Source of the DNA: Macrostomum lignano | Lineage: Eukaryota | Assembly: GCA_002269645.1 (NCBI GenBank) | Contig: NIVC01000553.1 | Coordinates: 94,554-158,553 of the forward strand | Length of the DNA: 64,000 bases | Reading direction: 5' to 3' | Part shown: piece after piece, positions 43,406 through 63,331 of the stretch | Layout of the letters: the number at the start of each line of letters is the position of its first letter | Position numbering within the stretch: the stretch's first letter is position 1 | Notes under the pieces: generated by a model | Databases searched by the model: none | Seen by the model: only the letters and a program-made list of their open reading frames with translations | Told to the model about the DNA's origin: nothing | Position numbers and translations under genes: made by a program

Positions 43406-44404
43406 ATTGACGCAAGTTGTGACCCTGCGCTCAAACAAAAGAGCGATCAAGACAATACAACAGGCGAGAGACAGGAAAAAATGGAAACAAAAGCCTTGCT
43501 CACCCAGAAAGACTCGCTCCCGTTCACCTGAGGAACAAGTTGAAGATGAGGCATTGCCACCTTTCTGCAGTAAGATGCTGAGTACAACTGAGGTGCGACC
43601 AACCTCGCTAGGGTCACTGCCTGCAGCTGTCACTGCAATACGCATTGAGGTATAAGACATTATAAGCACCACCTGTCAATCAAACCATAGAAATTGAGAG
43701 AACTAACCAGACAGACGCCAGTCGACATCAATAATTTGTGAGTAGTCCATGAGACAGGGAGTTGGACAACTGGAAATATAGTGTAGTGCGATTGTCAACT
43801 ATTATTAAAGTTGCGCATCCCGCAGCCAACAAGCTCATCAAGGTTTAACCTCTGTTGTAATAAAAAATCAATACACGAGCTACTTAATTTAAAGTGCAAA
43901 ATTCTAACTAGAGTAAAACGCTTATTACTTACTATTAGTAGTCGTTTGTTAGCTAGTTAACAGGTAGGTCTTAAGGCATGCCTAAGAACCCACATGCTTG
44001 TACAGCGGCTCTTGTGTCTTGTGTGATGGCCTTCATGGGTTGTGAGTCACTGGCCTACTCTGTACCTTACTAATAGTAGCAATGCATGAAATGATTCGAT
44101 TAAAAAAAACAAAATTCAAGTTAAAATGAATTGAATTTGTATGTACTTTGGCCAACAGGAATTTTAGCTGCTTTCGGCAATGTCAACGAGTACTTTAACG
44201 AGACATTTTCTAAACAAAAAATACAATAACCAAGGATAATCAGGGACAAACAACTGCATAACAAAACAAATTTTTGACAAATAACAGGACATAGTAATAG
44301 ACACTAATTTAGACACAGTCTATAAGTAATCTGACAGATTCTGACACAGTGTGTTACGATAATTTTTACAGCTAATTATGAATCTGATTGTTATTAATCA
44401 GTTT

Positions 44405-44835
44405 TAAATCAAACCTGACAGTCTGACATCAAATTTGAAGGATTGACAGTCAGAAATCAAACCTGACAGATTCTGACAGTCTGACATCAAATCTGACACA
44501 TTCTGACAGTCTGACAACAAATCTGACACATTCTGACAGTCTGACATCAAATCTGACAGATTCTGACAGTCTGACATCAAATCTGACAGATTCTGACAGT
44601 CTGACATCAAATCTGACAGATTCTGACAGTCTGAAATCAAATCTGACAGATTCTGACAGTCTGACATCAAAGCTGAGATATTCTGACAGTCTGACATCAA
44701 ATCTGACAGATTCTGACAGTCTGACATCAAAGCTGAGATATTCTGACAGTCTGACATCAAAGCTGAGATATTCTGACAGTCTGACATCAAATCTGACATA
44801 TTCTGACAGTCTGACATCAAATCTGACAGATTCAA
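44405..44835. repeat. Minisatellite, 30-bp unit TCTGACAGTCTGACATCAAATCTGACAGAT
   Basis: Tandem repetition with internal TCTGACA sub-repeats. Confidence 0.93.
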
Positions 44836-44912: not shown

Positions 44913-45332
44913 TCAGTCCTTTTTAGTCCGCCTGTCCTTAGCCTCGGTCAGCAGCCGGGCTCTCTCCTTATCAACAGTCAAGTTCATCATCTGATAGATG
45001 AGGAAGCACAGAATCACCACGCAGTTGACCAGCACCGGCACAGACCAGATAAAGGTAATGAAAAATCCAGGTGAATCGAAGTACTGCTCCCCAAATCTGA
45101 GGACTCGCCAGTGCGTCGCCAACTGACGATTGACGGCATCGGCCGCCAAGACGCTGGCTAGAAGCAGCAAAAGCAAGCCAAACAGTAGCCAACTTCTTCT
45201 GCGCAGCAACAATATCAGCAACAGGCAAACAGGATGAATGCTCAGCAATATTAACAGGCCGGGCTCCGTACGCCAAGATATTGTTGACAGGGCGGACAGC
45301 GGGCCCGAGATCTGGCTTGTGTCAATCCAGTC
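44913..45332 (-). CDS. TMEM18: Transmembrane protein 18 (139 codons after an acceptor; no in-frame ATG)
   Basis: W..EP.L..L..H...LASVLAADAVNRQLATHWRVLRFGEQYFDSPGFFITFIWSVPVLVN matches remembered TMEM18 ([42 protein letters not shown]); acceptor tttgtattacgcttcag|GAC with an upstream CCTAAT branch-like site. Confidence 0.88.
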   Translation of the reverse strand, partial: DWIDTSQISGPLSALSTISWRTEPGLLILLSIHPVCLLLILLLRRRSWLLFGLLLLLLASVLAADAVNRQLATHWRVLRFGEQYFDSPGFFITFIWSVPVLVNCVVILCFLIYQMMNLTVDKERARLLTEAKDRRTKKD

Positions 45333-46075
45333 CTGAAGCGTAATACAAAGAAATGTAAAGTTCTAATTAGGTGACGAAGCTTTTTATATTTAAATTAAGC
45401 TATAGTTACTCCCACTGTTTACCCGACCCGATGAAAACGGTACCTAAGGCCAAGAAGCGTCCCAGTCATTTGCGTCGAGCATCTTAGCATTTTATTTTCT
45501 GCGACTCTGGCGCACTCATTACAACTCTATTTAGTCTACTTGAGTTAGTAGAAAGTTAAGCTCTAACACAGCCATTCTTGGACGACTTTTTGCGACTCTA
45601 AAAATCCCGTGATGCGCTCGTTACTCAAGAGTCGCCTAATTCGTCGCATTGAAATCGTGAATCATTAAAAAGTCACAAGAGTGGCCCCAGAATCGCTAGA
45701 GTCACCAGTGAGTTGCTTGCAATGACTCTTAAGCAATTCTTGTCACGGTATCGTTTTCAACGGGCTAAAACCATGCCATGTAGTTTAAATCTTTAACTTT
45801 AAAGGACATCAAAAGCAATCCAGCCCGATCAAGGTTTACGTCCCGGATCTCAGCTCTCTTATTATTTTTCTTTTCTCCTCTCCTATCTCCCCTCTTCTCT
45901 CGCCTCGCCCCACTTCTCTCTCCTCTCATCTCCCCCTTTTCTCTTCACTCCCCTCTTGTCTCTCCTCTCCTCTCTTCTCTCTACTCTCCTCTCTTCTCTC
46001 TCCTCTCCCCTCTCCTCTCTCCTCTCATCTCCCCATTTTCTCTTCTCTCCCCTGTTGTTGTTGTTGTTGTTGTTA

Positions 46076-46900
46076 CTCCCGGCCGGTTGGATCCGGGGGG
46101 GCGTGTCTGCGCCCCTACCGTGCGGAGGAAATCGAGCGCGCGGAGGCCGTCCGTCGAGAGGACGGCCAGGGACGGGTTTGGCCCTAGGGTGCGGGCCCGA
46201 AGGTCGTCAAGGGCCCGGCAGTGCAGGAGGACGTGGGCCACGTCTTCGTCGGCGGCCCCGCAGCGGGGGCAGGTGGCGGCGGTGTCCAGGCCGATCCGGT
46301 GCCGATACCAGCGTAGGAGCGGTGAGTGCCCGTGCGCAGCTGGGCGAGGGTCACCGCGTCGGCCCGGTTAAGGCGTGGCCGCGGGGCGGCGATGGCGGTT
46401 GCCAGACGGTGGGTGGCGCAGTGCGGGTCGGCCGCGTTGGCTTCGCGGGTGCGCTCGGCGAGGACCCGGCGGAGGGCGGCCCGCGCTGACCCGAAGTCGA
46501 TCGGCGTCTCCTTCTGGGGGAGGCCGGCCGCGGTCTTGGCGGTGACGTCCGCAGCATCGTTCCGCCGGAGGTCGCAGTGGCTGGGGACCCATTGCAGCCA
46601 GATTGGGAAGCGGGCGGCGACGTGGGTCAGCAGCGTCCAGATCTCCCGGCACGCTGGCGAGGAGGACTTGGACGGTCCCTTCTCGAGGGCTCGGAGCAGG
46701 GACTGCGAGTCCGTCAGGCAGCGGAGGCCGCTCAGGGAGGCAAGGTCCGGCCTGGAGGCGACGTGCTGAAGCCCCAGCCGGAGAGCCGACTCCTCGGCAC
46801 GGAAGGAGGAAGAGTAACGGCCCGCAGCCTGCGACAGGTGGACTGGCGGCGCGGTCTTGCTGAAGATGACCGCCCCCGCTCCGCCGTTGAGGGTGCCCCG
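46076..46900 (-). pseudogene. Frameshifted C-terminus of the retrotransposon ORF: RNase H and CCHC zinc finger
   Basis: After a shift at the G4 run (46896-46899): NGGAG, SSFRAE, TDSQS, WVPSHC, RNDAAD (RNase H). After a second shift (about 46330): LRTGH..., CPRCGAADEDVAHVLLHC (CX2CX8HX4C). Confidence 0.85.
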
Positions 46901-49900
46901 GAGGCTGAACCGTCTGTCCAGAGCTCCAGGTCGGCGGGCGGGAGGCTCGCCAGCGTCTCCAGCGCGGCCAGCTTTCTGACGTGGGGCGCCTCTTCTCGGG
47001 AGGTCGCGGTCAGGAGGTCGCAGCGGATGGTGATCCGGCTGGTGTCGGACCATGGCGGCGGAGGGAGGTTTTCCTGCTCCCGGGGGAGGGTGGCCAGGCC
47101 GGCGGCGGCGCTCAGGTGCTGCGCCGAGTCGCGCCAGTTCCTACGGAAGGCCCCAGGCTCCCCGTGAGCGCGCAAGCGGGGCGTAGAGGTCTTGCCCGCT
47201 GCAGCGCGGAGCGGAGTCGGTTGTCGGTGACGGAGGGCTCGCTCGAACAGGGCTGCGCCTGCCGCCTCCGCTCTGGTCGCCAGGGGCACGAGGTCGGCCT
47301 CAGCCATGAGGGCGCCAATGGCGGTCGAGCGGCAGCAGCCAGTGATGACGCGGGCGGCCGATCGGTGCGCAATCTCGACTTCGTCCCGGCAGGAGTCGGA
47401 CGCGAAGGTGAGCCACGTGGAGGCGCCGTGGAGCGCGGCCGCCTCCGCGTAGGTGCGGTAGAGCTGGGCGAGGCGCTGGCCGTCCTGGCCCCAATCGCGG
47501 CCCGCGAGGCAGCGTAGGACGCCGGTGCGCTGCTGGAGGGCGCGGCGCCGGAGCTCGGCGTGGTGGCGGAAGGTCAGCTGGGAGTCGAGGTGCACTCCCA
47601 GGAGCCTCGGATGCAGCTCGAACGGAGCTGGCGAGTCGCCGAGGAGGATGCGCGGCTGGACCTTTCCGTTGACCTCCCGGGGGTCGAGCGAGAAGAAAGC
47701 GACGACCGACTTGGTGCGGCTCAGGTCCACCTTCCAGGTTTGGGACCAGCGCACGAGCCAGTCGGCCGCCGGTTGCAGGGCCCGCTCACACTCCCGAGGG
47801 GTGGTCCCTTGCGCGCCGAAGGTGCTGTCGTCGGCGTACGCCAGCGTGAGGCAGTTCGTGGGGGCGCCGTCCAGGAGGTCGTCCATGTAGATCACCCACA
47901 GGATCGGGGCGAGGACCGACCCCTGCGGCAGCCCCTCGGAGAACACGGTTGGCTTGCAGGCCGCACTAACCCACCGCACGAAGGCCCTCCTGTCGGAGAG
48001 AAATCCCTTGAGCCAGCGGATGAGGCACGTGGGGATCCCCTTCCGACCGAGCTTGACGATGAGGGCGGCTCTCCAGACGCGGTCGTAGGCTCTGGAGAAG
48101 TCTGCAAGGAGCAGAGCGGTGCGGGCTGCCGGCTTCTTGGCCTGGAAACCGTCAAAAATGTACTGGGCCGCCGCGGCGATGTGCTCCTCCGTGGAGCGGC
48201 CCTGACGGAAACCGGCTTGCGACGGGTGGAGAGCGTCATTTGCCTCGAGGATGTAGGACAGCCGCTCGTTCACCATCTTCTCCGCGAGCTTGCCCAGGCA
48301 GCTGAGGAGGCTGATAGGGCGGAAGCTGGATGTCAGGCCGGCTGGCTTGTCCGATTTGGGGATCGGGCGGATCTCCGCAAGGCGCCACGGGGCGGGCACC
48401 TCCCCCGTCCTCCACGAGAGGTTCAGGAGGTCCAGGAGGCAGCGGAGCCCCAGGTCGGACAGATGCTTCAGCATGATGTTCGCGACACCGTCCGGTCCTG
48501 GGGCCGAGCGGTCCGGCAGGCGCACCAAGGCGCGGCGGAGGGCGTCGGGCTGGAAGTCGGAGCAGGGGCCGCTGCGGAGGCCTTGGCAGCTGCAGGGGGC
48601 GCGGAGCGTGTGACGGGCTTCTTGGATGACCGGCCGGTCTTCCGCCTTGTTCTTGGGGAGCCTGCTGACGGCCGCGTACTCCCGGCAGAGGCAGAAAAGC
48701 GCGGCCTTCTGTTTGTCGGAGACGGCCGGTGCCCCCGTGGAGCCCTGGATGGCAGCCGACGAGGGGGTGCCCTGGGACCGTCCGTCGAGGGCCCGGATGA
48801 TCCGCCAGAGGTCGGCGGAACACAGGTCGTGACCCGGGTCAGTGATGAAATCACGCCACAGCGACTCCTTGGCGCGGCAGATGGCGTGAGCAGCCGCGGC
48901 GGCAGCAGCCTGGTACGCGGCCGAGAGCGCCGGGTCGTCCGGACTCGCGCGAAGCGCTTCGAGCGCCGCGCGGCGGGCGGTGCAGGCCGCCTCGGCTTCC
49001 GGGCACCACCAGGCGATCGGGGCGCGCCGGCAGCCTCTCGGGATGGCCGCCTTGGCGGCGCTGGTGACGGCGGACGCGAACCGGTTGGCGGCGACGGGCA
49101 CCGTGCGTGGGGGGCGCTCCGGCCAGCTGGCCAGGGCCTGGTCGAGGGTCCGCTGGAACAGGTCCCAGTCCGCCTTGTGGTAGGCGTACCGCGTCAGGCG
49201 CTTGGAGCTGGAGCGGGCCGGGCCGGAGGCTGCGATGTCGATGATGATCGGCAGGTGGTCTGAGCCGATGTGCTCCCCGGTTCGCCACTCGATCCGGTCT
49301 TGCCAGGAGGCGTGGGCGAAGGAGACGTCAGGGGAGCTCGGCAGGCCGCGGGGGCTGATCCTAGTTGGGGAGCCGTCGTTCAGAGCGACCAGGTCGTAGG
49401 TCGTCGCCCAGTCTTCGAGGGCCCTGCCCAGCTCGTCGTCGTCCGCCGAGGCGTCCCACATCCCGTGGTGGGCGTTGAAGTCGCCCAGCACCAACGAGTC
49501 CCGTGAAACGGGGATCCAGTCGGGCTCGAAGGCGTCCGTGCGGCCGTCTGCGGCGCGGACCGGCGGGAGGTAGATGTTGATCACATCCAGGGGACGTGGT
49601 AGCCGGGGGTCGTGGATACGGAGGCCCGAGGCTTCGGCGGACGTGGCGTGGGTGACGAGCTCGCCTAGTGGAAGGTCGGCGAATTGAATGCCCTCCTTGA
49701 CAAGGAAGCAGACGCCTTCGTGGTGGGTTCTGGCTGCCTCCCCGTCGCGGCCGATGTTGCGGTCCTTCCGGCCAGCGATCTGCCACCCTTTGAGGCGTGG
49801 GGCCGCTGTGTTGCCGGACAGGTTCGTCTCCTGGATGCAGGCGACGTCGGCGCCCTGCTTCTCCAGGAAGTGGAGCAGTTCCAGCTTGCGGGAGCGGAGC

Positions 49901-50460
49901 CCTGCCGCGTTGAGCTGGACGATGCGGAAAGCCGCCCCGCTGTTGTTCGGCGCCCCCGCCCGCGCTGGTTGCGCCATCAGGGGGGGCGGGGGTGCCGGTG
50001 CGGGGTTCGGGGGAGGTGGAGTCGTAGCCGTTGGCGTCTGGTGGGTGCCAGTGGGGCCTGCAGCCGCGGAGGGGGCCGGAGTCGCAGCGGGCTGCGGCGC
50101 TGAAGCGGCAGGCTGGTGGGCGCAGGTGGGACAGTGCCACGGTGCCTTGTCCCGGTGGAGCCGGTTGATAGCCGCAATAGTGAGGCGGGAACAGCGGCGG
50201 TGCCACCACAGGCCGCAGTCGGAGCAGCAGGTGGAGTAGCCCCTGGCTACCTCCTCGGCACAGCCTCCGCACGGGAAGGCCGGCCCAGGGTTGGACTCGA
50301 CGTCTCCAGCTCTGAGAAGCAGCTGAGCCAGGTGAGCTGGGAGGCCTGGCTCAGCGTGGAAAAACCCGGGGCGCTCGAAGACCCTCGCACGGGTCCGGGG
50401 TGGTGGCTGCACTTGGCCGGGCGAACCCGGACGGTCCCGCCGCGTGAAGGCGGCAGCCAT
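46732..50460 (-). CDS. Retrotransposon polyprotein: 2A peptide, PHD finger, AP endonuclease, reverse transcriptase, start of RNase H
   Basis: PHD CxxC...CxxC..WWHRRC...WHCPTC (50271-50122); APE QLNAAG, CIQET, VINIY, GDFNAH, SDHLP (about 49930-49240); RT APGPDG, FRPISLL, QAGFR, DFSRAYD, GLPQGSVLAP, YADD, LGV; RNase H begins at WTDGS. Confidence 0.95.
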   Translation of the reverse strand: MAAAFTRRDRPGSPGQVQPPPRTRARVFERPGFFHAEPGLPAHLAQLLLRAGDVESNPGPAFPCGGCAEEVARGYSTCCSDCGLWWHRRCSRLTIAAINRLHRDKAPWHCPTCAHQPAASAPQPAATPAPSAAAGPTGTHQTPTATTPPPPNPAPAPPPPLMAQPARAGAPNNSGAAFRIVQLNAAGLRSRKLELLHFLEKQGADVACIQETNLSGNTAAPRLKGWQIAGRKDRNIGRDGEAARTHHEGVCFLVKEGIQFADLPLGELVTHATSAEASGLRIHDPRLPRPLDVINIYLPPVRAADGRTDAFEPDWIPVSRDSLVLGDFNAHHGMWDASADDDELGRALEDWATTYDLVALNDGSPTRISPRGLPSSPDVSFAHASWQDRIEWRTGEHIGSDHLPIIIDIAASGPARSSSKRLTRYAYHKADWDLFQRTLDQALASWPERPPRTVPVAANRFASAVTSAAKAAIPRGCRRAPIAWWCPEAEAACTARRAALEALRASPDDPALSAAYQAAAAAAAHAICRAKESLWRDFITDPGHDLCSADLWRIIRALDGRSQGTPSSAAIQGSTGAPAVSDKQKAALFCLCREYAAVSRLPKNKAEDRPVIQEARHTLRAPCSCQGLRSGPCSDFQPDALRRALVRLPDRSAPGPDGVANIMLKHLSDLGLRCLLDLLNLSWRTGEVPAPWRLAEIRPIPKSDKPAGLTSSFRPISLLSCLGKLAEKMVNERLSYILEANDALHPSQAGFRQGRSTEEHIAAAAQYIFDGFQAKKPAARTALLLADFSRAYDRVWRAALIVKLGRKGIPTCLIRWLKGFLSDRRAFVRWVSAACKPTVFSEGLPQGSVLAPILWVIYMDDLLDGAPTNCLTLAYADDSTFGAQGTTPRECERALQPAADWLVRWSQTWKVDLSRTKSVVAFFSLDPREVNGKVQPRILLGDSPAPFELHPRLLGVHLDSQLTFRHHAELRRRALQQRTGVLRCLAGRDWGQDGQRLAQLYRTYAEAAALHGASTWLTFASDSCRDEVEIAHRSAARVITGCCRSTAIGALMAEADLVPLATRAEAAGAALFERALRHRQPTPLRAAAGKTSTPRLRAHGEPGAFRRNWRDSAQHLSAAAGLATLPREQENLPPPPWSDTSRITIRCDLLTATSREEAPHVRKLAALETLASLPPADLELWTDGSASGAPSTAERGRSSSARPRRQSTCRRLRAVTLPPSVPRSRLSGWGFSTSPPGRTLPP
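50281..50340 (-). other. 2A (StopGo) ribosome-skipping peptide
   Basis: HLAQLLLRAGDVESNPG|P fits the D(V/I)ExNPG|P consensus with a Leu-rich upstream helix; skip site between 50284 and 50283. Confidence 0.85.
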
Positions 50461-50495
50461 GGGAAGCGCGCGAGCGCGCTCCGGGAGGCGGAACC
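50404..50495 (-). ncRNA. Candidate HDV-like self-cleaving ribozyme at the element 5' end
   Basis: Manual fold: P1 GGUUCCG/CGGGACC, P2 UGGCUG/CAGCCA, P3 CCG/CGG with L3 CCUUCACG, P4 CCGGG-UUCG-CCCGG, J4/2 CCAAGUG, hairpin in J1/2. Confidence 0.65.
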
Positions 50496-50919
50496 TCCCG
50501 ACCTCTCCCCTCTTGTCTCTCCTCTCCTCTCTCTACTCTCTACTCTCTCCTCTTCCCTGTTCTCTCTCCTCTCCCCTCTTCTCTCCACTCTCCCCCCTCT
50601 CTACTCTCCCCTCTTCTCTTTCCTCTCCTCTCTGGCCAGCAGTTTTGCGCTAGTTTCAATATCTCGCCCTTAGGTTAAAAAGTTCGCCGACCTGTGCTCT
50701 AACAATTTAACCTTCGCTAAAATATAAAAATAGTAATAAAGAAATTAACTTTTTAAGATGAAAGAAAAAGCTAAGCTAGAAAATTTAACCAAACGCGGCA
50801 CTTTGGTCTGGATTTATAGGACAATTTATTAATCATAATGATTAAAAGTACATGTGATACATTGATTGATTGATAAGTTTCTGTCTGATAAGCAGCATAG
50901 CAGATTGAACCGATAGAGT

Positions 50920-51346
50920 TCAGAATTCTTCACTTCCGCTATCCTCTTCAGCGGCAGCTGATTTCGCACCGCTTCTGGTGCGACGAACTGTTGGCTTAGT
51001 TTTCTTTGATGTTGCCGCCTTTTTTGTTGTTGGCACTTTCCGTTTGATGTTGCCGCCGCGTTTGATGTCGCCGCCGCCTTCGCTATTAGCAGCATCGCCG
51101 TCTCCAACTTCGTCTGACTCAGACCTGTCAACTGGATCCTTGTCAACCAACTGGCGAATGCGCTCTTTTTTAGAGTTGAGCACTCGGGAGAATGCAGTCA
51201 GGAGATTGTCGCGTATGGCGGCCTTCTCAGCGGCAGTTCCAGTGTACTTGGCCAGCAACTGTTCGTTGCGCTGGTGCAGATCAGCCAGCTCAGCTGATTG
51301 GCTGGCCAAAGCGGCCTGAGCTGCCGCCAGGTGGGACTCCAATGAC
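50920..51346 (-). CDS. XRCC4: XRCC4 exon 2 (coiled-coil stalk and disordered tail)
   Basis: KAAIRDNLLTAFSRVLNSKKERIRQL resembles XRCC4 [26 protein letters not shown]; acceptor ctgacag|G (phase 2). Confidence 0.85.
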
Positions 51347-54300
51347 CTGTCAGAATGAGCATTGTTGAGTTGGTCAAGGTAATAACTGTATCTATATATT
51401 TCCAGTAATAGATAGAACAGGTGTACATCATCCAGTTAATATATGAGGGGTGCTACACAAATTTTCAGACTGTGTTCACAGCAGACATCAGAATTTAAAG
51501 AAGTTAAATTTTTACCTAGGGTCTTTGGCTTTTGTCTATGGCCCAAATGCATGCATGCAACATTCAATTGCATTATCAATCACATTACATTTTAGGGGCT
51601 AAATTGGCATGGCAAAATGAATTATAGAGCATATCTATATATGTCTGAGTGTATACAAGAGTTAGTAGAATTGGCAGAAATGCTTCTTACCAGTTATGAC
51701 AATGTTACTTAAAATTCATCATGGTACACATAGTCCCTGCCTCTAATAAAAAACTATAACTCTGGCACAAGAGTCTACTCTGCCTTATCGTTTAGATAAA
51801 ACAAAAATATATATTAGCAAAACTGGAAGTTTTTAGATTATTCTTTAAATTTAGATTTTTAATATAAACTTGAAACTATATTTTAAAGAATAGCTTATAC
51901 TAAAAAAATGACTTAAAGGCATATTATGTCTAATACTAATATTAGTTTTATATATCGAATTAAATAAATTTTCATTATAGAAACTTTAAACTTTTTCATT
52001 AAAGAAAAAACACAAAATAACTTAAAATAAAAATCAACTTTTAAATGCCAAATAAATAGAGCAACAAAAGTAAAAAAATGTTGTACAATAAATACTCTGT
52101 ATAGAGATGTGGTAGGCCTTTTGCCTCTGTCTTTATAAGCTAATCTAAAAGCTGCCACTAGTTATCTTCCTATATGAGGTAAACTCCACAGTAATGCCAC
52201 CAAAGTTATACTAAGGCTTTCAATATATTGCTGTCTCTTAGAACTAATTTGTAATATTTAGTTTTAACATATTTCTGGTAATACTCTATATATTGTCTTG
52301 TAATGTCTGATGTATAGTCTGGTAGTATTAATATACTATATAGCCTAAGCAGTCTTTATATGCACTAGTTTCTAATCCAGATATTACTGGGATCAAAGTC
52401 CCAGTGTCACAGCACCTTAAGTATGGCGTAGGACCAAGACCACCACACTTGGGGGAGCTAAGGGAGAAACTTGACTCAATGTGTTATTAGATGGTGCTAG
52501 AAAGGAGATGAGTGGGTAAAAGAGCCAGCAGGACAAGGCTGCAAGAAAAGAACCTATGAGAGGAATAGCAATGCTAGAAGATTGGTAGCTCCCCCTCCAG
52601 ACTCCAGATGGTGTACATGTACGCCGGAATTTTTTGGCGTACAGAGGGATCTGGCGTACACCATTGGCGTACAATTGGCGTACATAGGAGCCTGGCATGC
52701 CCCTTGGCATACAGCTTGGCGTACAAAGATCGCCAAGACAGCAGGTGGGTGGAACCAAGTTTGGCCCTTCTGTGGCCACTCTGCCTCTCCAGTGGAGAGG
52801 TTGCAGTCTGTTTGTAAAAATAGCCACCTCAACCTCCGACCCGCGCGCTGTTTTTTTGGGGGGTGGGTGAACGGGTGGGTTCACATTCAAGGCAAATAAC
52901 CCCCCCTGTGTTGGGGTTGCAATTAAATTTAATGATTCCCCCGGGATGGGGGATTGGGCTTGAGCTGAGTGTACATATCAATGTACAGTGTAAACAGAGA
53001 GGCTTCAGTTAGCTAAGACTGTGTTGAGATTCAATTGGTTTTATTATCGGCTTGCCTTTCAATTCAATAGGCAGCCCTGTGTATCTCTTGTTATTGCTAT
53101 CGCTTGTCTATTGTGAATTTTGAAAATTGTTGACTGCAACCCTGCAATATGAGTGAACAAGAGTTTGAGCCAGAGATGAGCTCTGAGCTTGAGGTTGAGA
53201 TTGAGGATAAGAGTCACACAGGTGACACAGCATACTCACAATCTCATGTGAGTGATTGTGATGATGTCATTGATCTTGTTGAAACAGCTGCTGCTACATG
53301 TACATATACATCTGCTGCTAGTGCTACTAGTGTTACTGCTTCAACAACAGCTACAGCAGAGCCTTCGACTAAGTCTAAGACTGCACCTGCTACAACAACG
53401 ACTCTAATTCCTGGTAATTAGGTTACTTATTTTTAGTTACATATAATATACTATTACCTTGTATAGTGCTACATATCACATCACATGTTACATGTATGTA
53501 TTGATTAGGCTTATAGTTGTGAACATGAACACTTCATTGAAAAGATATGCTCCCAGCTGGATCCAGTGCTGTGGCACATGCAGCCAGACCCCCAGGACTG
53601 ATTGGGCCATTATTGGCATTGGCATATTTGCAAATATACTCATATAAATGCATTGTATGCAAATGCAAATACATTTAAACTAAACTAAATTAACACTTGA
53701 ACAATACATAAAGGTTCTTCTAGACCATCTGGAGCATCTAGGCAATGCAGTGGCTGCATGGGCCCACATTACAGCACAAATGGCAGCAAAGCGACCTGCT
53801 GCTGGCCAGCCTGATGGGCAACCTTTTGCCCAGTTTTTCAAGCCCTCAGTGCTCCCTGCTGGCCCAAGCAGGACAACTAAACCATACTGTCACTTCTGCC
53901 TTAGCTGCCTACAAAGAGGCTTAGAGCCTAACAAGTGCAACATTTTTCGAAATGATGCCAGCTCATGGACCAGGCACACTTCTAGGTAAGGGTAACTGAA
54001 CTCAATAGTGCTTGTGCATGAAAAATCTGGCACATTTACATGTAGAAACACATGGGGTGTTAATTGTTACGAAAGTATTGCCACATGCTTCTCCTAGGGA
54101 ATCAAACCTGTTTTTAGTTGAAACCGTTATCATTCGATGCATTGCTCCCCAGATTTATTAATTTTTATATGAAATACGCAGAATATATGTTAAGTTAAGC
54201 ATGTAGCAATTACTCTGATGCAGGGAGACCACTGAAGTAAAACTTCTTGTATTATGCTTGTACTTGCTTTTTGACAAGAAACTTACTACTGCCTAATTGC

Positions 54301-57300
54301 ATTTAACAGGCATCACAAGGACAATTTGTTGGCCAAGTTTTTTCTGGAAGACCATAGGGAGGTCCTGCCCTATCTGCGTAGCAGGAATGAGTCTAGCAGT
54401 CAGGCCGACTGCAGTTCTAGCGCGGCGGAGACCCCTGCAGCTGAAGCTGCCGGTGTGAGCTCGTCTGGTGCCTTAGCATCTTTGCCTGCCATGCCCCCTT
54501 TACCCATCCTTCAGGCATCCTTGCCCTCTGTGTCGGCGACCTCGCGGGCCATGCTATTGCCAGCAAACTCATATCTGGCCTTGCCAGCAGTGTCGGCCCC
54601 ACCGTCGCCAAATGTGTCTGCGTCCACTCTTAATAGTACAGACAGACTAGTAGCTCCAGTGGAGCAGATGTCGGAACAGCAAGCAAAGCAGGCAAGACTC
54701 CTGGCGTGTCTCGTGGAGCAGGGCCAGGCAGGGTCAGCAGCTAGTGCTAAAGCAAGGGCCAATCAGTCAATTTCGTCATCATCGATAGCCATGGTGCAAG
54801 CGAAAACTATGGGCGAGCTGCTGGGCCACGAACATCTGGACTCGGATCCTTTGGGCAATGACACAATTGTGTATTGCAAGCCATGTATGCACCTTCAGGT
54901 AGAGGAGTGGAAAAGACAAGGCCTCCTTCCAACTCGGCATACTGTTGCTGAGGCACACCGTGCACTGTAAGTGAAATTCATCGTCACGAGCAACGAAAAT
55001 GTGTGCAAAAAGAAAACTTGTCCCAGATGTGACTCAGAATGCCATGACCGGGACAGACATTTTTTTACAAAGTTCTTGCGTCATCTTTGGACTATAGATG
55101 TACTGTGCAATTTGAGAGCAATTTATGTAAATCCCGGGGCGATTTTGCTAGAGTTAACACATTACCACTATTACTATTCCCATCCAGGAATCTGGCCTGT
55201 GACGGCACTTTGAGTATGGGCCTGCTTATCCGCGAGGATCGGATGGGCAGATGGCCACTTTGCTGGCTGGTGGCCCCGAATTTTGCTGGTTTAGATACAA
55301 TGTCAGCCAGCACTTAGATAGTTGAGTGCCGGCTTTGGAATGAGTGGGAGCGGCATGGAATCGACGTCGTGCGCAGCCTTATGCGCTGCGCTATCGCAAC
55401 GATAGAAACCATTTCGAGACACTTGTCTGCCTCTTGTCCGCATGCAAGTGTGACATTGGGCAAATCTGCCATGGGTCGTAAGTTTGCATTCTGGTGAACC
55501 TTTAATCTTTTTTAGTTAGTTTTACATGTGTGCCTAATATCTACTCAATTTTTATTGAGGAGGGATCAAAATATTCTAAAATGCATATTTTTATAATACT
55601 AATAAAACGAATACAAACTAAGTTTCCCTAATAAACTAAGTTTCTCTAATTACCTAATACACTGCGTACATCGCCTACCCTCACTATTAAGGGACTTTGG
55701 CTGTAAGATGTGGAAGCTTTTCAAGGTATGCCTGGACGTGATGACCGTTGCATTTCTCCAGAAGCCGCTTCTGTCGACTGGTCGGCTGCCCAACTTTTGC
55801 GTGACGTGTGACAAAAGCACATTAGGTAAAAGTTAGCAGATTTTCTTGTACGCTCGTAGCAAAACTGTGTTGGGACAGGATGATTTAAACAAAAGACCTT
55901 GTATTTGTCAACCTTGGTAATGTTGATGCCTAATTGAAAACAGGGCGCGTAACTAACCAGGCCGTCCTACTGTTGTGCCGATCAAGTTCTGGAGCGGCCA
56001 TCTCTATCCCAGCTGGGGCGCCTGAGGTGTATAACGCTGACATGGACAGATCAGGTATCCCTCTTTTTGTAACATGTGTACTGTTATAAAGAAGCCAAAC
56101 AGCCAGTTAAATTAATTCATATCAATTTATACTGAATAGAGTAGTAAAACCCAGCCTGCAAACAAATCGTTACTTAACAGGCCCAATTCTTGCGAAGCGG
56201 CTCTTTGACTCGCTGACCTGTTTTGCCGCCCCACTGGACCGGCTTGTGGCAGTAGTGGCCGATGGACAATACCAGTCGGATCCGTTCAAGAATGCAGTGG
56301 CCGACACGCTTTCTGACTCAGGAGGTAATGGCTCCATCCCTGTGATTTGGGACGTTGCCCATTTCCTCAATCTGGCCGTCAACGACGTGCGGAATGGGAG
56401 CGGAGAAGAGGCGACGATGCTGAAGCGATTTGTGTGTCGTGCTAACTTGTTTGCTCACCATTTTGGCCAGGGTCGAGGATTTTCGGCGCTGCAGATAAGG
56501 TTTTTATTCTTTCAACTTAAATTTGAGGGATTGTTTAAGCTGTAAATATAAATATCTTTAAATTTAGAAAGGCCTTCATGCCAATTATTCCGTCAGCATG
56601 GCCCAGAGCCCTGGACCTTTTTAATGACTGCTTAAACTTTTGTACAGAAGGGCCTTCCGCACAATTATCCACACTCATTTAAGGCCGTGTCAGAGGCACA
56701 GCGCGCGCTGTGTCCAGTTTTGCGATGCAGCGCTTTCTTTCCTCTGCAACTTCATAGTGGAAAGCTATCGAGGAAGCGTATGCCGAGCTCTACGATGCTT
56801 TCATTTCTGAGGGGTTCGACTGCTCAGACAACGCGCCGCTTCAGTACGAGCTTTTTGGAAGCGACTTTGTTTTTGACCTACTGTGCCTGCTTGACCTTGT
56901 AGAGCCAATCTGTGCCTTGATGTCACTCGCCCAGGTTTGTATTTGCTTGATTGTATTGTGATTTTTGTTCTTTTGTCTACTTAATTGCACTGTGCCATCT
57001 CAATTAGCTCTTATGTGAAAGTTTGTAATACCGTAATTACAGTAACAGATATATAACTATTGTCTAAAATAGTGGCTAACTCTACTATAGCGTGGTTACT
57101 GCTATGTGATCCGAAAGTGTATGAACTAGGTTTGTGATGAGAAGTATGCACGTCATGTGTGCACAACACTTAATCTCACCATGTTAAATAGTATTTGCGT
57201 GTAATGCTAGTTCACAAACATTGTCCCCTGCACAGGACATTCAGCTACCACACTGAAAGGTGGTTACAATGTGGCGGCAGGTTGCAGACTTTCTGCACAA

Positions 57301-57429
57301 TTGCAGTGAGGTCTTCCGCAAGGAAGATTATACGCGGTACGCACGTGTGGCCGACGGCATCCACCCTGAAGGTTCCTTCCATGGCATGCCGCTGCTGGAA
57401 GGGTGGCTGATCAAGACCCGTCCCCTCTG

Positions 57430-58000
57430 GTAAATAAACCAGATAACACCACAAGATAATTTGCGAATCTTGTCAGATTCACTACCGATTTCCTTGTTTA
57501 AGGTGCGAAACTGGTGAAACCACCAGATTCGTCAAAATGTAATTTTAGTGTTATCTGGTTAGACTGTTATCTGGTGAGTTATCTGAATTTCACCAGATAA
57601 CATGGCCCGAATCTTGCTTAGAAATCAGATTACATGACAAGATTCGCCATCAGATAATTTTTTGCTTTCTTATTTGACTGTTATCTGGTGAGTTATCTGA
57701 ATTTCACAGGATAACATAGTGCAAATCTTGTTTGAAAAACAGATAACAGTACAAGATTCGCCATCAGATAATAATTCTCTGTTATCTTGGTTGATCGAAT
57801 CTTGTTTGAATTGGAATTTCACAGGATAACATGTTTATTGTTTGAAAAACAGATAACAGTGTTATCTGGTTTGTAAGAAACTTGTGTGAATCTGAAATTT
57901 GTTGGATAACATATGCGAATCTGGTTTGCAAATCTGGTTTGCAAAGCAGATAATGGAAAAAGATTTCAATCAAGATGCCTTTGTGTTATCCGGTCTGTAA
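57430..58000. repeat. Element made of interspersed GTTATCTG/CAGATAAC and CGAATCTTG/CAAGATTCG motifs in both orientations
   Basis: Motifs recur many times on both strands. Confidence 0.65.
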
Positions 58001-58374
58001 GATCCCATTGTACTTTTCACCCAGAATTTTTTTCCAGAATTTCGTGATCTGGGCCCGATTTATTAATTGATTTCCAAGTGAAGGCTTGGATCAGCATTTT
58101 TGGCCCGGAATAGCCCCTCTTTTCTGGAAAATGTGATTCTACAAAAGTTCAAGAAAAGGGAAAAGCTGTTCCAGCTGGATTTGGAACTGGAACAGCTGCT
58201 AAATTCTGATTGCAGACCTAAATCTCAAGTTTTCCAAATGAAATTTTCTGCATGAGATTTTGGGAGTTCAGTCGGAATTCCTCAGCGATCTAGACCAAGT
58301 GATCCGGAAAATCCACAGGAATCAGCTCCCATTGACCAGAATCTTAATGAAGTTACGGATAAGACTGGTCTTCC

Positions 58375-59180
58375 GTCTGTTGTGGCTTAAGGCAGCTGCT
58401 ATGCTGACCTGCGATGGATAATCAATCCTCACTTCTGTTGTGGCTCAAGGCAGCTGATAAGCTGACCTGCAATGGATAATCAATCCTTGCTTCTGTTGTG
58501 GCTCAAGGCAGCTCCTAAGCTGACCTGCAATGGATAATCAATCCTCACTTCTGTTGTGGCTCAAGGCAGCTCCTAAGCTGACCTGCGATGGATAATCAAT
58601 CCTTGCTTCTGTTGTGGCTCAAGGCAGCTCCTAAGCTGACCTGCGATGGATAATCAATCCTCACTTCTGTTGTGGCTCAAGGCAGCTCCTAAGCTGACCT
58701 GCGATGGATAATCAATCCTTGCTTCTGTTGTGGCTCAAGGCAGCTCCTAAGCTGACCTGCGATGGATAATCAATCCTCATTTCTGTTGTGGCTCAAGGCA
58801 GCTCCTAAGCTGACCTGCGATGCATACATGCGCAACCTCCAAAATTCGGTCGGCCGTGCGACTTAGTTTTAACAAAAATGCGACGTAGTTTTTGGCCAAA
58901 AATGCGACTTGCATGTAAAAAAACCGTAAAGCAAAATTAACGCAAGTTTGGGTAAACGGCAGGAGTAACTATGACTCTCTTATTAAGCCAAAATGCTTCG
59001 TCAGCTACTTAGTACTACTACTAGGGTGTTTTTTGAGTGGGCATTTTTGCGACTTCCTTGGTTGGTCGCCAAATCGGTCGGCCGGATCGGCCGACTCGGC
59101 CGACTGTTGCGCATGTATGCTGCGATGGATAATCAATCCTTGCTTCTGTTGTGGCTCAAGGCAGCTGCTATGCTGACATG
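58375..59180. repeat. 58-bp tandem repeat (about 8 copies plus one after the MITE)
   Basis: Unit starts at 58418 and 58476 (58-bp period); a further partial unit lies near 59600-59660. Confidence 0.93.
58823..59119. mobile_element. Non-autonomous hAT-type MITE (297 bp)
   Basis: Perfect 14-bp TIR CATACATGCGCAAC (58823-58836 / 59106-59119); 8-bp TSD CTGCGATG (58815-58822 / 59120-59127). Confidence 0.92.
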
Positions 59181-60137
59181 GAAGGGGTAAAGTGCCATAT
59201 ATCAGCTAACGCTAGCGCTCGTAATGTGAGGCCGTGCCCACCCTCCCTGCAGGTGATAGCTTTGTTGGCTCTCAGACAAACTATTGCATTCTTATTGTGC
59301 TGGAGAGGTTTGACTCCCAATGGCATGTAGTCTGTCGCGGTTACTTAGTGTATCAAATTACCCTATTATCTGGTGCAGCTGGGTGTCTAGATGGAGCTGT
59401 GGCATGGTTCCAAAAGCTCCTACTGGCCCAGTTCTAAGGTAGCCTTTTCTTTTTTAAGACAGACGTTATTCTAGCTCTTGCTAGAGCATGCTCCATTGGG
59501 TTGTCTAAAGCGTCTGCAGTGTTGGTGTATGGCCACCAGCAAGGGATAATGGGACCCCGCTTCAACCGATGAATCAGAGTTGAGCAGTTGACTGAAAATG
59601 CTGACCTACAAGGGGTAATCAATCCTCGCGTCTGTTGTGGCTCAAGGCAGCTGCTAAGTGTAGTCACTTTTATTTGACTACTTGGGTCAATCTTTAATCC
59701 GAGGGGTAATAAAGCCTTGAAATTGCAAGTTGAACTGATCTGCTTTTTGGAGACACTGTAGCATCCGTAAAGTGAGGCTGTGCCCATCCTCCGTACAGGT
59801 GACAATTGAAAAATTGTTGCGCCCTGATTGTGTGTAAGAGGTTTGACTACCACTGGCATGTAGTCTGTCACAGCTGCTTAGTGTGTCAACGGGCTGAATG
59901 ATTCTATCGTCATATTTGACACTTAGAAGCATAAGTTAGCCAACCATATTGTTTGGCACAGCTGGGTGTCTAGACAGAGACTGTGGCATGGTTCCAAATA
60001 GCTCTAACTGGCCCAGTATTCAAAGCAGCTTTCCTATTAAGATAGACGCTAATCCGATTTTTGTTGGTGCATGCTCCATTGGTTTGTCTTTAAGGCATTT
60101 GCAGTTGCACCAGCTGTAAGCAGATCAAGTCAAGATA

Positions 60138-60312
60138 GTAGTCGTTATAGACTAGAGTGTCAGTAATCTTGTCGAGATTTAATAAATCCTCAAACAAGTC
60201 AAAAGAGTAGTTGTTACAAACTACGAGTGTCGGTAATCTTGTCGAAATTTAATAAATCCTTGAACAAGTCAAAAGAGTAGTAGTTACAGACTACGAGTGT
60301 TGGTAATCTTGT
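60138..60312. repeat. About 70-bp tandem repeat, 2.5 copies
   Basis: Unit starts at 60138, 60207 and 60277. Confidence 0.85.
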
Positions 60313-62429
60313 CAGCCACTTTTTCTGGAGGGTGTCACTGCTTCGAACAACGCAGTTGATGATGCCATTGGACGATCGTCCATCGCACTAGCGACATCTG
60401 CAACGCCAAGTCATTTGGATATTACCGTTGGCACACGGGATTGCGAAGACAATCATGTAAGAGTTTCCAGCGTAGTCGGGATTTCGTGGATGCAACAAAG
60501 CCAGCACGGCGCATCAGATAATACACTATTCACTTTGTCTCTGGTCTACGAGCAGCCGATCAACGAAAGCCAGTTGATTCTGGATGACGACTATGCTACA
60601 AATGACAATTCTATCAACACAGCTGACATTACTAGTGAACAGTCGAACAATCTGGCGGCGAACCGTCACTGTCTGTTAGAGCTAGATGATAGAGTGTGTA
60701 TGTACATTACTGTTTCTTTATAACTGTGTATATTTCGGAGATACTGCCTTCCATCGCCCTTTAATTTAACTTTAATAATGCAGAGTCGTTCTATTGCGCC
60801 AGCATATAATGCAAGCCCTCAGTGGTCTCATTAATTGCCTTCCGTGCGCACAACCCGATCTTTCAAACGTCTGGCTCACGCGTCAACTGCCATCAGAGTC
60901 GCATCGCAGGTTTTTGCACATGCAAGACTTGGAGCCATTCCTGTTGCGGAAGTACGTGGCCAATTTTGTTGACGCAATCAAGCACGTGAGTTTTTATTCT
61001 ATTGTATCAGGCAAAACCACCGAACTGGCCCTTGTCAATTGTATGTAAATAGCCTAAAATATGAAAAATTGGGCATGTTTCAATGTCAATTGAAATATTG
61101 AAATCCAACGACCAGTTAGAACATTTTTTCTAGCCAAGGAGTGCCCCATTGAGTCATAATGATTTGAATTTTCTTTTTAAACTGTACATTTTTCAGTTGT
61201 TGATGTATTCTAACTAAAAATACAATTGAAGCACTCGTAAAAAACTGGACCGACTGGACTTTATGATGACTTTAAAATATGTAACTGATGTCTCTCAAAA
61301 AAGACTTTAAATAACTCTTAGCTAATTGTAATATGACATCCAAAATCTCAATCAGGTTCTTTATTCTGGGGAAGGGCGTGACAGCTGGCTCGAACCCCAC
61401 ATCGAGGGTGCCTTTCGGTGCCTTTGTATTGTCCCACTGCGACTTCCAGCCGACTTCAAGAGGCGCCTGTCTGTTACAAAAGAAGACGACTCCATTGTCA
61501 AGGTTACGCTAAATGAGGAGGCTCTCCTTAAGTCCTTCTACACCAATACCTCTGTGTACTGTCGCGCTGGGAAATAAGCTTGCACCCTTCTTGACTTTGC
61601 GCTTAATTGCAGTGGTACTGGTGAGATTACTTCTTTGACATGATTGGTGTAGATCAGAGAAGCCCAAATTTAAGTTAACAGTAGAGCTATATGTACAAGC
61701 TCAACCATTCAATATAGTAGTTATACATTCATGTATTTTAATAAACCAACTACATGTACATGTATTTATACTACATGCAAAAAAGTGCTACTTAAAAACT
61801 TATTTTATTCTCTCAACAGAGGCTGTCACCAAATCGTTTTAAGGAATGATGCGCTCACAGCAAAAGTATGGCAGGCAAACCAACGAGGTCCTGCAGCGCC
61901 GTACTAAGTTGAAGTGGATGCTGCCTCCCTTGGGTAGCAACGCCTGCGAGCAGTTCTTGGCATCTGTAAGCACTGCATGCCATACTTCGTCTCTAGCCAC
62001 GCCACGCACTACATTGTTAGCAAAGTGGTGGATTGGCAAAAGGATCTAACATTGTATAGCGACTTTGTCGGCACTGCCGCAGAACATATCAACGACTAAT
62101 ACCATGCTGACATAAGTGGGAGTGGGAAAACCCATTGAAAATGAAGGCTAATTTTGAAAGTAATATAAAGTGCTTAAGTGTATGAATCTAAGTTGTGGCA
62201 AATACTAAGTTGCAAAAATTGAAAATGTCAATAACAAGTCCCAGACAGTCTTATTTCCATAGTCATATAGTGCATACATGTTTAATGAGCCTCAGAAATA
62301 TCTATCCTCAAGAATGTGGCTAGTTGCCAATGGGCAACCAAAAATAGCCATTGGCAACTGGATTTTAAGCCCCAAGGGCTAGCTGGCAACTAGATTTCCA
62401 ACCTTAAAAAAACCAGAAGGCAACTACCT

Positions 62430-62860
62430 ATATAACTTTTGCCAACACATATTCAGACAGATTTTCCAACACTTAAAATGTTGCAAAAAGTGTCGGAAAG
62501 TGTTGCAACGGTTAACTTTTGCCGACACATTTTCAGATTTAGACAGATCTTCCGACACATTTTACGACACTTAAAATGTTGCAAAAAGTATCGGAAAAAG
62601 TGTTGTAAAAGTTAACATTCGCCAACACATATTTTCCGACACCTAAATTAATGCTGCAGTGTCTGATGCTTTACTTCTGCCAACACATCTTCCGACACTT
62701 AAAATGTCATTTCTTAGAGCGAGGTCATGTACATGTAACTTTTTCCGACACTTTTTGCGACATTTTAAGTGTCGTAAAATGTGTCGGAAGATTTGTCTGA
62801 AAATGTGTCGGCAAAAGTTAACTGTTGCGACACTTTTTCCGACACTTTTTACAACTAAGG
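62430..62860. mobile_element. Foldback/MITE-like element with about 100-bp inverted arms and many CCGACAC motifs
   Basis: 62500-62601 is the near reverse complement of 62738-62833. Confidence 0.7.
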
Positions 62861-62984
62861 TAAGGCAACTAAGCGGCTCCTAGGGCCTAATTTTAAAAAG
62901 AACAATATTTTTACAGAATGTTCTAAAACATGGTAACAAAAACAAACAAATGTTTAATCAATATTTTTACTCAAAAATACTTAC

Positions 62985-63331
62985 AAAGCAACATTAAAGA
63001 TGGGCATAAAATCTTCTGATGTTAATTTCTCATTATTGATTTCAATAATATCAAATTGAATGACTTTAATCACAATATCATCAACATTCTTGCAAATTGA
63101 CACAGACTTGTTGGCACTATCAATTCGTGCAAAGAAAAGTTGCTTATCTTGTTGAACAGGTTTGAGAGTAGCAAAAAAGTCTATACCATCACTAAAAGCA
63201 CTGGAAACCTTAAGAAGAGAAACACAAGAACCTTCAATTTTCCATCCAGTGATAGAAGTTTTGGAGGCGGACAGCAAAATAAAGCCTGGTTCGGAGTCCT
63301 CTAACTTTATAGCAACGATTGTATTGTTCAT
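62985..63331 (-). CDS. XRCC4: XRCC4 exon 1 (head domain)
   Basis: ATG at 63331; KNVDDIVIKVIQFDIIEI resembles KNLKDVSFRLGSFNLEKV; donor TT|GTAAGT (phase 2) joins exon 2 to give a 257-aa protein. Confidence 0.75.

Follow-up and report, generated by a model that had tools for sequence, protein, structure and literature searches.

The spliced-leader AUG as the probable start codon of TMEM18 in the flatworm Macrostomum lignano

Results

The TMEM18 locus

We analyzed a 64,000-nucleotide stretch of the Macrostomum lignano genome, referred to here as the window. A gene for TMEM18 lies on its minus strand, with an upstream gene of the same orientation on one side and a COMM-domain gene on the other. 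The features that bear on the start of TMEM18 are given below in the order in which they would be transcribed; a slash within a sequence marks a splice boundary.

50829-63331, minus strand: upstream same-strand gene, first exon MNNTIVAIKLEDSEPGF...; no Pfam match
46058-50500, minus strand: non-LTR retrotransposon (LINE) with a 1242-aa ORF carrying AP-endonuclease and RT domains
45363-45365, minus strand: in-frame TAG, closing the TMEM18 frame 10 codons upstream of the acceptor
45333-45360, minus strand: pyrimidine-rich tract and 3' splice (trans-splice) acceptor CTTCAG/, assigned from sequence; ends in cgcttcag, with the AG at 45334-45333
44913-45332, minus strand: TMEM18 coding sequence in a single exon, 139 sense codons (DWIDTSQ...RTKKD) followed by TGA, without an initiator ATG of its own
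44415-44833: 30-nt tandem repeat of the unit CTGACAGTCTGACATCAAATCTGACAGATT in 14 copies (92% identity), lying about 80 nt past the TMEM18 stop
43751-43769, minus strand: 5' UTR of the downstream COMM-domain gene, from the acceptor tttccag/TTGTCC (43770/43769) to the gene's own ATG at 43750, 19 nt on

The TMEM18 exon opens with GAC at 45332, directly 3' of ...ctttacatttctttgtattacgcttcag, and its TGA occupies 44915-44913. Translation of the frame gives DWIDTSQISGPLSALSTISWRTEPGLL...KERARLLTEAKDRRTKKD, in which the earliest Met is residue 114 of 139 (IYQMMNL). Upstream of the exon the same frame runs back to the TAG at 45365-45363, and no ATG occurs between that stop codon and the exon. The preliminary description of this locus had the coding region begin in phase 0 at a strong acceptor with no usable Met, and the position of the GAC, the late Met and the TAG 10 codons upstream all bear this out. 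The acceptor itself, CTTCAG, matches [T/C]TNCAG, which is the top-enriched motif at M. lignano trans-splice acceptors (PMC8629364). Rfam gave no match anywhere in the window, and scanning the 600 nt ahead of the acceptor for repeats returned nothing informative.

The exon encodes a TMEM18 protein that lacks essentially only its Met

The product matches the Pfam family of TMEM18 (PF14770) with an E value of 5.8e-26 and 91.2 bits against a gathering cut-off of 26.9, and the match pairs residues 15-131 of the protein with positions 3-117 of the 118-position profile. Because the match begins at residue 15 and profile position 3, no part of the domain is missing from the N-terminus, and essentially only the Met is lacking. 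TMEM18 is a small membrane protein conserved across eukaryotes, and the window protein resembles its counterparts in the near-complete profile, the hydrophobic segments and the basic C-terminus (KERARLLTEAKDRRTKKD). The window gene departs from TMEM18 elsewhere in that one exon contains the whole protein and the genome provides no start codon for it.

The only close database match is the M. lignano protein PAA93047.1, which is 99% identical and is entered as "hypothetical protein BOX15_Mlig018444g1, partial"; PAA46156.1 and PAA92967.1 share a 90%-identity cluster with it. A library-wide HMMER search returned 565 homologues at E <= 1e-3, and the named TMEM18 orthologues among the best matches come from crustaceans, a sponge and the trematode Calicophoron daubneyi. 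In a MAFFT alignment, the N-termini of the orthologues lie 0-11 residues ahead of the first D of the window protein. The trematode orthologue (P0005) is annotated with a longer N-terminus of its own, MAANFTEF.... The preliminary description had argued from length, in that one SL-encoded Met would bring the protein to 140 aa as in human TMEM18. This argument is weak, given that the homologues are mostly about 105 to 250 aa long, but the same N-terminus is favored by two full-length orthologues in the alignment (P0010 and P0019), which start exactly one residue before the D.

The M. lignano spliced leader ends in ATG and would join the exon in frame

The spliced leader (SL) of M. lignano is of a single kind, 35 nt long (CGGTCTCTTACTGCGAAGACTCAATTTATTGCATG), and GTAAG comes after it in the gene for the SL RNA (PMC8629364). 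Its published 3' end is ...TTGCATG, and about 30% of M. lignano genes are trans-spliced (PMC8629364). An organism without SL trans-splicing, an outcome that the preliminary description had named as incompatible with its proposal, is thus not what we are dealing with. We detected neither an SL RNA gene nor the SL sequence in the window or in the paralogous loci.

That flatworm SLs ending in AUG can supply the initiator, which the preliminary description took as known, is confirmed by the literature. The source is Cheng, Cohen, Ndegwa & Davis (2006, J Biol Chem 281:733), whose results are available to us as summarized in PMC9851317, where such reading frames are termed "slORFs". According to that summary, the SL AUG of Schistosoma mansoni is in frame in 28% of the transcripts that are trans-spliced, and over 40 cDNAs depend on it (see also PMC12582326). 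The ATG of the Macrostomum SL is likewise called a start codon in PMC10468722. Our search of the literature found no paper that names TMEM18 as an SL-AUG gene or counts such genes in M. lignano.

The TMEM18 exon is in phase 0 with respect to the leader: SL ...GCATG followed by GACTGG reads M-D-W, with no stop between the SL AUG and the TMEM18 ORF. No AUG other than that of the SL could yield the conserved protein, as the first in-frame Met, residue 114, falls near the end of the Pfam domain at residues 15-131. The SL AUG would have U at -3 and G at +4. By the vertebrate-type rule, U at -3 makes for a weak initiation context.

Transcript models end at the acceptor, and one copy carries the SL 3' end

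TMEM18 is present in four assembled copies, designated L001, L002, L003 (contig NIVC01005026.1) and L004, the last of which is the window; the 20 kb surrounding TMEM18 there match contig NIVC01000553.1 at every base. Each of the four has a single-exon, RNA-seq-derived GenBank CDS that is 5'-partial and starts at the boundary of the TMEM18 exon, at either the D or the next codon, W. In the GenBank annotation of this assembly (Mlig_3_7, GCA_002269645.1), TBONE maps trimmed SL reads and cuts transcripts at those sites, after which TransDecoder calls the ORFs (PMC5730564). A CDS is 5'-partial when its ORF reaches the 5' end of the transcript model; the models therefore end at the 3' splice site. 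A trimmed SL junction would be expected to give such ends, and a cis-spliced mRNA with an upstream exon would not. Transcripts with a cis-spliced exon supplying an in-phase ATG were the other result that the preliminary description had named as contradicting it, and the RNA-seq-derived models give no sign of one in any copy. GenBank labels the TMEM18 proteins "partial" and not SL-initiated.

The acceptor AG is present in three of the four copies, and the motif [T/C]TNCAG recurs outside the window as CTTCAG in L001 and CTCCAG in L002. In the remaining copy the last five bases before the exon are GCATG, the 3' end of the SL:

L003 6828-6832, corresponding to window 45337-45333: GCATG in place of TCCAG or TTCAG, with the AG lost and a genomic ATG gained; identified from the alignment of the copies

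When the four upstream regions are aligned, L003 reads ...TATTACGCGCATG/GACTGG against ...TATTACGCTCCAG/GACTGG in its twin L002, so that GCATG/GACTGG stands where L002 has TCCAG/GACTGG. The two copies are 99.1% identical over 15.9 kb and differ by about nine substitutions outside tandem repeats, of which three fall within the 4 nt before the TMEM18 exon (TCCAG to GCATG). The GCATG of L003 opens a 140-codon ORF starting MDW. No further site at which an SL suffix precedes a long ORF was found in the compared loci.

The simplest reading of this difference is that reads from the SL junction overwrote the acceptor during polishing of a contig of low uniqueness. Assembly Mlig_3_7 was polished with Pilon using RNA-seq reads mapped with STAR; the end-to-end mode of STAR is stated for transcriptome assembly and not explicitly for polishing (PMC5730564). 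If polishing was also end-to-end, reads carrying a few SL bases would not be clipped but would be aligned despite the mismatches. Whether the GCATG is an artefact or a real conversion, it points to SL addition exactly at 45333/45332, with the AUG in frame.

Two other candidate sites were considered and rejected. One is an in-frame TAG/ at 45363 as an alternative acceptor, which would extend the protein by NFTFLCITLQ; it departs from the acceptor motif, and both the annotated starts and the GCATG of L003 lie at CAG/. A second cluster of three substitutions between the twin copies (L003 12721-12725, L002 15881-15884) was set aside as an SL footprint. It reads AAGAATTGGCAGAG against AAGCAGAGCAGAG, a difference in CAGAG that looks like slippage or an assembly difference unrelated to the SL.

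Exact look-up of six candidate products in a collection of 15 billion proteins found none of them; the six were three 140-aa variants beginning MDWID..., two SL-extended forms of 150 aa and one 139-aa form beginning DWID... with L38M. A scan of metagenome contigs for the SL junction GCATGGACTGGATTGACACAAGCC also gave no match.

Candidate upstream exons and divergence between copies

The preliminary description stated that nearby upstream ATG-donor pairs are in phase 2 and do not fit the exon. This holds for the two consensus-like donors, AG/GTACCG (exon end 45444) and GG/GTAAAC (exon end 45423), which are both in phase 2 from ATG 45490 and ATG 45469, two codons that share one frame; the frame of ATG 45481 ends in a TAG. 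The statement missed three phase-0 options, however. One runs from ATG 45490 or 45469 to CGG/GTCGGG (exon end 45428) and would leave a 95-nt intron behind a non-consensus donor. The others are the one-codon exon ATG/GTTTTA at 45774 and a 30-codon ORF in the GA repeat, from 45929 to GAC/GTAAAC at 45840. Altogether, we enumerated 449 phase-0 ATG..GT combinations in the 18.6 kb upstream of TMEM18. None of these pairs a consensus donor with a plausible exon near TMEM18, and the combinations at 46.1-50.5 kb sit within the ORFs of the retrotransposon. The option nearest to the exon was considered as a feature in its own right:

45428-45490, minus strand: candidate cis mini-exon, rejected; ATG 45490 or 45469 to the weak donor CGG/GTCGGG, phase 0

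In L001, the first ATG of this mini-exon is lost (ACG), and the stretch has a 6-nt insertion and several substitutions. The mini-exon is also missing from the GenBank models.

Divergence between copies was assessed against L001, the paralogue most diverged from the window. The exon differs at 2 of 420 nt, whereas the 300 nt just upstream of the acceptor contain 22 substitutions and 15 gap columns. Over the upstream 600 nt, the contrast with the exon (26/591 versus 2/420) has a Fisher p value of 6e-5. By this pattern of substitution, constraint begins at the TMEM18 acceptor.

A separate observation concerns the block at 45633-45932, which lies 300-600 nt upstream of the acceptor. It has 4 substitutions in 300 nt between the paralogues, compared with the 22 substitutions and indels nearer the acceptor, and it has no Rfam match. 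The block could be a promoter or another regulatory element of TMEM18, in which case the fast-evolving part could be a discarded outron.

Neighboring genes and a possible operon

The upstream gene spans about 12.5 kb in the window versus 2.8-3.7 kb in L001 and L002, which indicates large insertions inside the window copy. The raw distance from its stop (about 50829) to TMEM18 is about 5.5 kb and is due to the insertion of the LINE. This element has a GC content of 0.70 against about 0.45 and carries a (CAA)n tail, and an RNase H ORF overlaps its long ORF in a different frame. Between the upstream gene and TMEM18 it interrupts a GA-rich microsatellite; the window, L002 and L003 carry the insertion, and L001 lacks it. 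The element is context, part of a putative outron or intercistronic spacer, and stands outside the TMEM18 gene. Without the LINE and the GA repeat, the spacer comes to about 760 nt (about 240 + 520 nt).

The repeat-adjusted intergenic distance used to define M. lignano operons is less than 1 kb (Ustyantsev & Berezikov 2021, PMC8629364). TMEM18 resembles the SL-resolved operons of that study in having same-strand neighbors, a downstream gene that begins at an acceptor, and a spacer of about 760 nt, under 1 kb. It differs from them in the raw spacing of about 5.5 kb that the LINE gives the window copy. TMEM18 may on this basis be an internal operon gene, and an internal position would make its trans-splicing obligatory.

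The COMM-domain gene is probably trans-spliced too, as a second member of the same unit. In L001, its annotated partial CDS begins 1 nt past the acceptor tttccag/. At this gene an SL AUG would lie in the wrong frame, opening a 14-codon upstream ORF that overlaps the real start. Between the TMEM18 stop and the start of the COMM-domain CDS lie 985 to 2169 nt in the different copies, much of it made up of the 30-nt tandem repeat.

Proposed initiation of TMEM18 and its alternatives

TMEM18 would be transcribed as the internal gene of a same-strand unit formed by the upstream gene, TMEM18 and the COMM-domain gene, or with a short outron of its own. The pre-mRNA would be trans-spliced at CTTCAG/ (45334-45333), so that the 35-nt SL (...TTATTGCATG) is joined directly to GACTGGATT... 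and its terminal AUG becomes codon 1 of the frame. The mRNA junction expected from this is ...TTGCATG + GACTGGATTGAC, with the junction string TTATTGCATGGACTGGATTGAC. Translation from the SL AUG would produce a 140-aa TMEM18, MDWIDTSQ...RTKKD, with the predicted N-terminus (Ac-)MDWIDTSQISGPLSALSTISWR; Met-Asp termini are NatB substrates, on which the Met should be kept and acetylated. We consider it probable that the SL is added at the TMEM18 acceptor and that its AUG is the start codon. The joining in vivo and the start of ribosomes at this AUG are what we infer from the ATG-less frame, the acceptor, the sequence of the SL, the 5' ends of the transcript models and the GCATG of L003, and these together lend support to the initiation from the SL AUG put forward in the preliminary description.

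An upstream cis-spliced exon could provide the ATG instead, and a flatworm acceptor may serve cis- as well as trans-splicing (PMC12582326). The three candidates, with ends at 45428, 45772 and 45840, are all in phase 0 with open frames. A 14-codon version of the mini-exon has an uninterrupted frame in every copy, since the 6-nt indel in L001 preserves it, and several orthologues have 3-11 extra N-terminal residues, where the mini-exon would add 14-21. The donors speak against such an exon, however: GTCGGG and GTTTTA fall outside GT[G/A]AG, which is the motif most enriched at M. lignano donors (122,399 of 187,627 cis-splice-site regions; PMC8629364), and GTAAAC fits it in part. None of the three candidates appears in the RNA-seq-derived model of any copy, where the CDSs are 5'-partial at the acceptor. 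Moreover, the mini-exon stretch is about 7% diverged between copies versus 0.5% in the exon and has lost its first ATG in L001, and by our own estimate a 14-codon frame would be open by chance about half the time. We therefore give a cis-spliced start little credence. Another account accepts that the locus is transcribed and SL-spliced but leaves the SL AUG unused, the mRNA being untranslated or decaying, or being translated from a non-AUG codon or from Met 114. It draws on the weak -3 context of the SL AUG and on the "partial" status of the GenBank product. Yet the 139-codon frame is free of stops in every copy, with 1-2 substitutions in each while the flanks evolve about ten times faster, and the entire Pfam domain is intact. 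A start at Met 114 would delete essentially all of that domain. An unused SL AUG is thus highly improbable.

The remaining alternative concerns NIVC01005026.1, where GCATG/ might be a real allele with its own ATG and no acceptor, arising for example from cDNA-templated conversion by SL-spliced mRNA. The sequence does stand in the deposited assembly, and it gives a complete 140-codon ORF. We regard a real allele as unlikely, though: the match to the SL extends over just 5 nt, which fits end-to-end mapped reads with a short SL overhang, and the assembly was polished with RNA-seq. The contig is moreover a short (28-kb) near-duplicate of NIVC01000036.1, and the GenBank model there is still 5'-partial and begins after the ATG. 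That SL-spliced TMEM18 cDNA specifically converted the 5' edge of the gene in this contig, hard-wiring the SL AUG and destroying the acceptor, is a conjecture we would not favor. A real allele would also need an SL-GACTGG mRNA as its template, and it would therefore support initiation of TMEM18 from the SL AUG without replacing it.

Discussion

Initiation from an SL AUG has been known in flatworms since 2006, and TMEM18 of M. lignano is probably a fresh example of it, not a new mechanism. As in the mRNAs described by Cheng et al. (2006), the SL ends in AUG, a phase-0 acceptor directly precedes a conserved ORF that has no ATG, and the product is predicted to be full length once the SL Met is added. 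The organism differs, being a free-living macrostomid and not the parasite Schistosoma, for which the cited papers describe the mechanism. The nature of the evidence differs as well, since the TMEM18 case is built on sequence, annotation and a footprint in the assembly, in place of cDNAs or translation assays.

For TMEM18 itself the outcome is a correction of annotation: the M. lignano proteins that GenBank calls "partial" are in all likelihood complete but for the Met encoded by the SL. The evidence on polishing is possibly the more useful by-product. Polishing of Mlig_3_7 with RNA-seq seems able to write the 3' end of the SL over the bases that precede an acceptor, which erases the AG and creates false genomic ATGs. 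This may matter more to users of the genome than the start of a single gene, and if the effect is general, it would touch other trans-splice sites in the assembly. If the L003 allele is real after all, it would offer a snapshot of an SL-dependent start codon becoming a genomic one. Other M. lignano genes that are trans-spliced in frame may likewise carry a wrong "partial" label. Adding the in-frame SL ATG systematically would mend these labels and yield, for the first time in a free-living flatworm, a count of SL-AUG-dependent genes.
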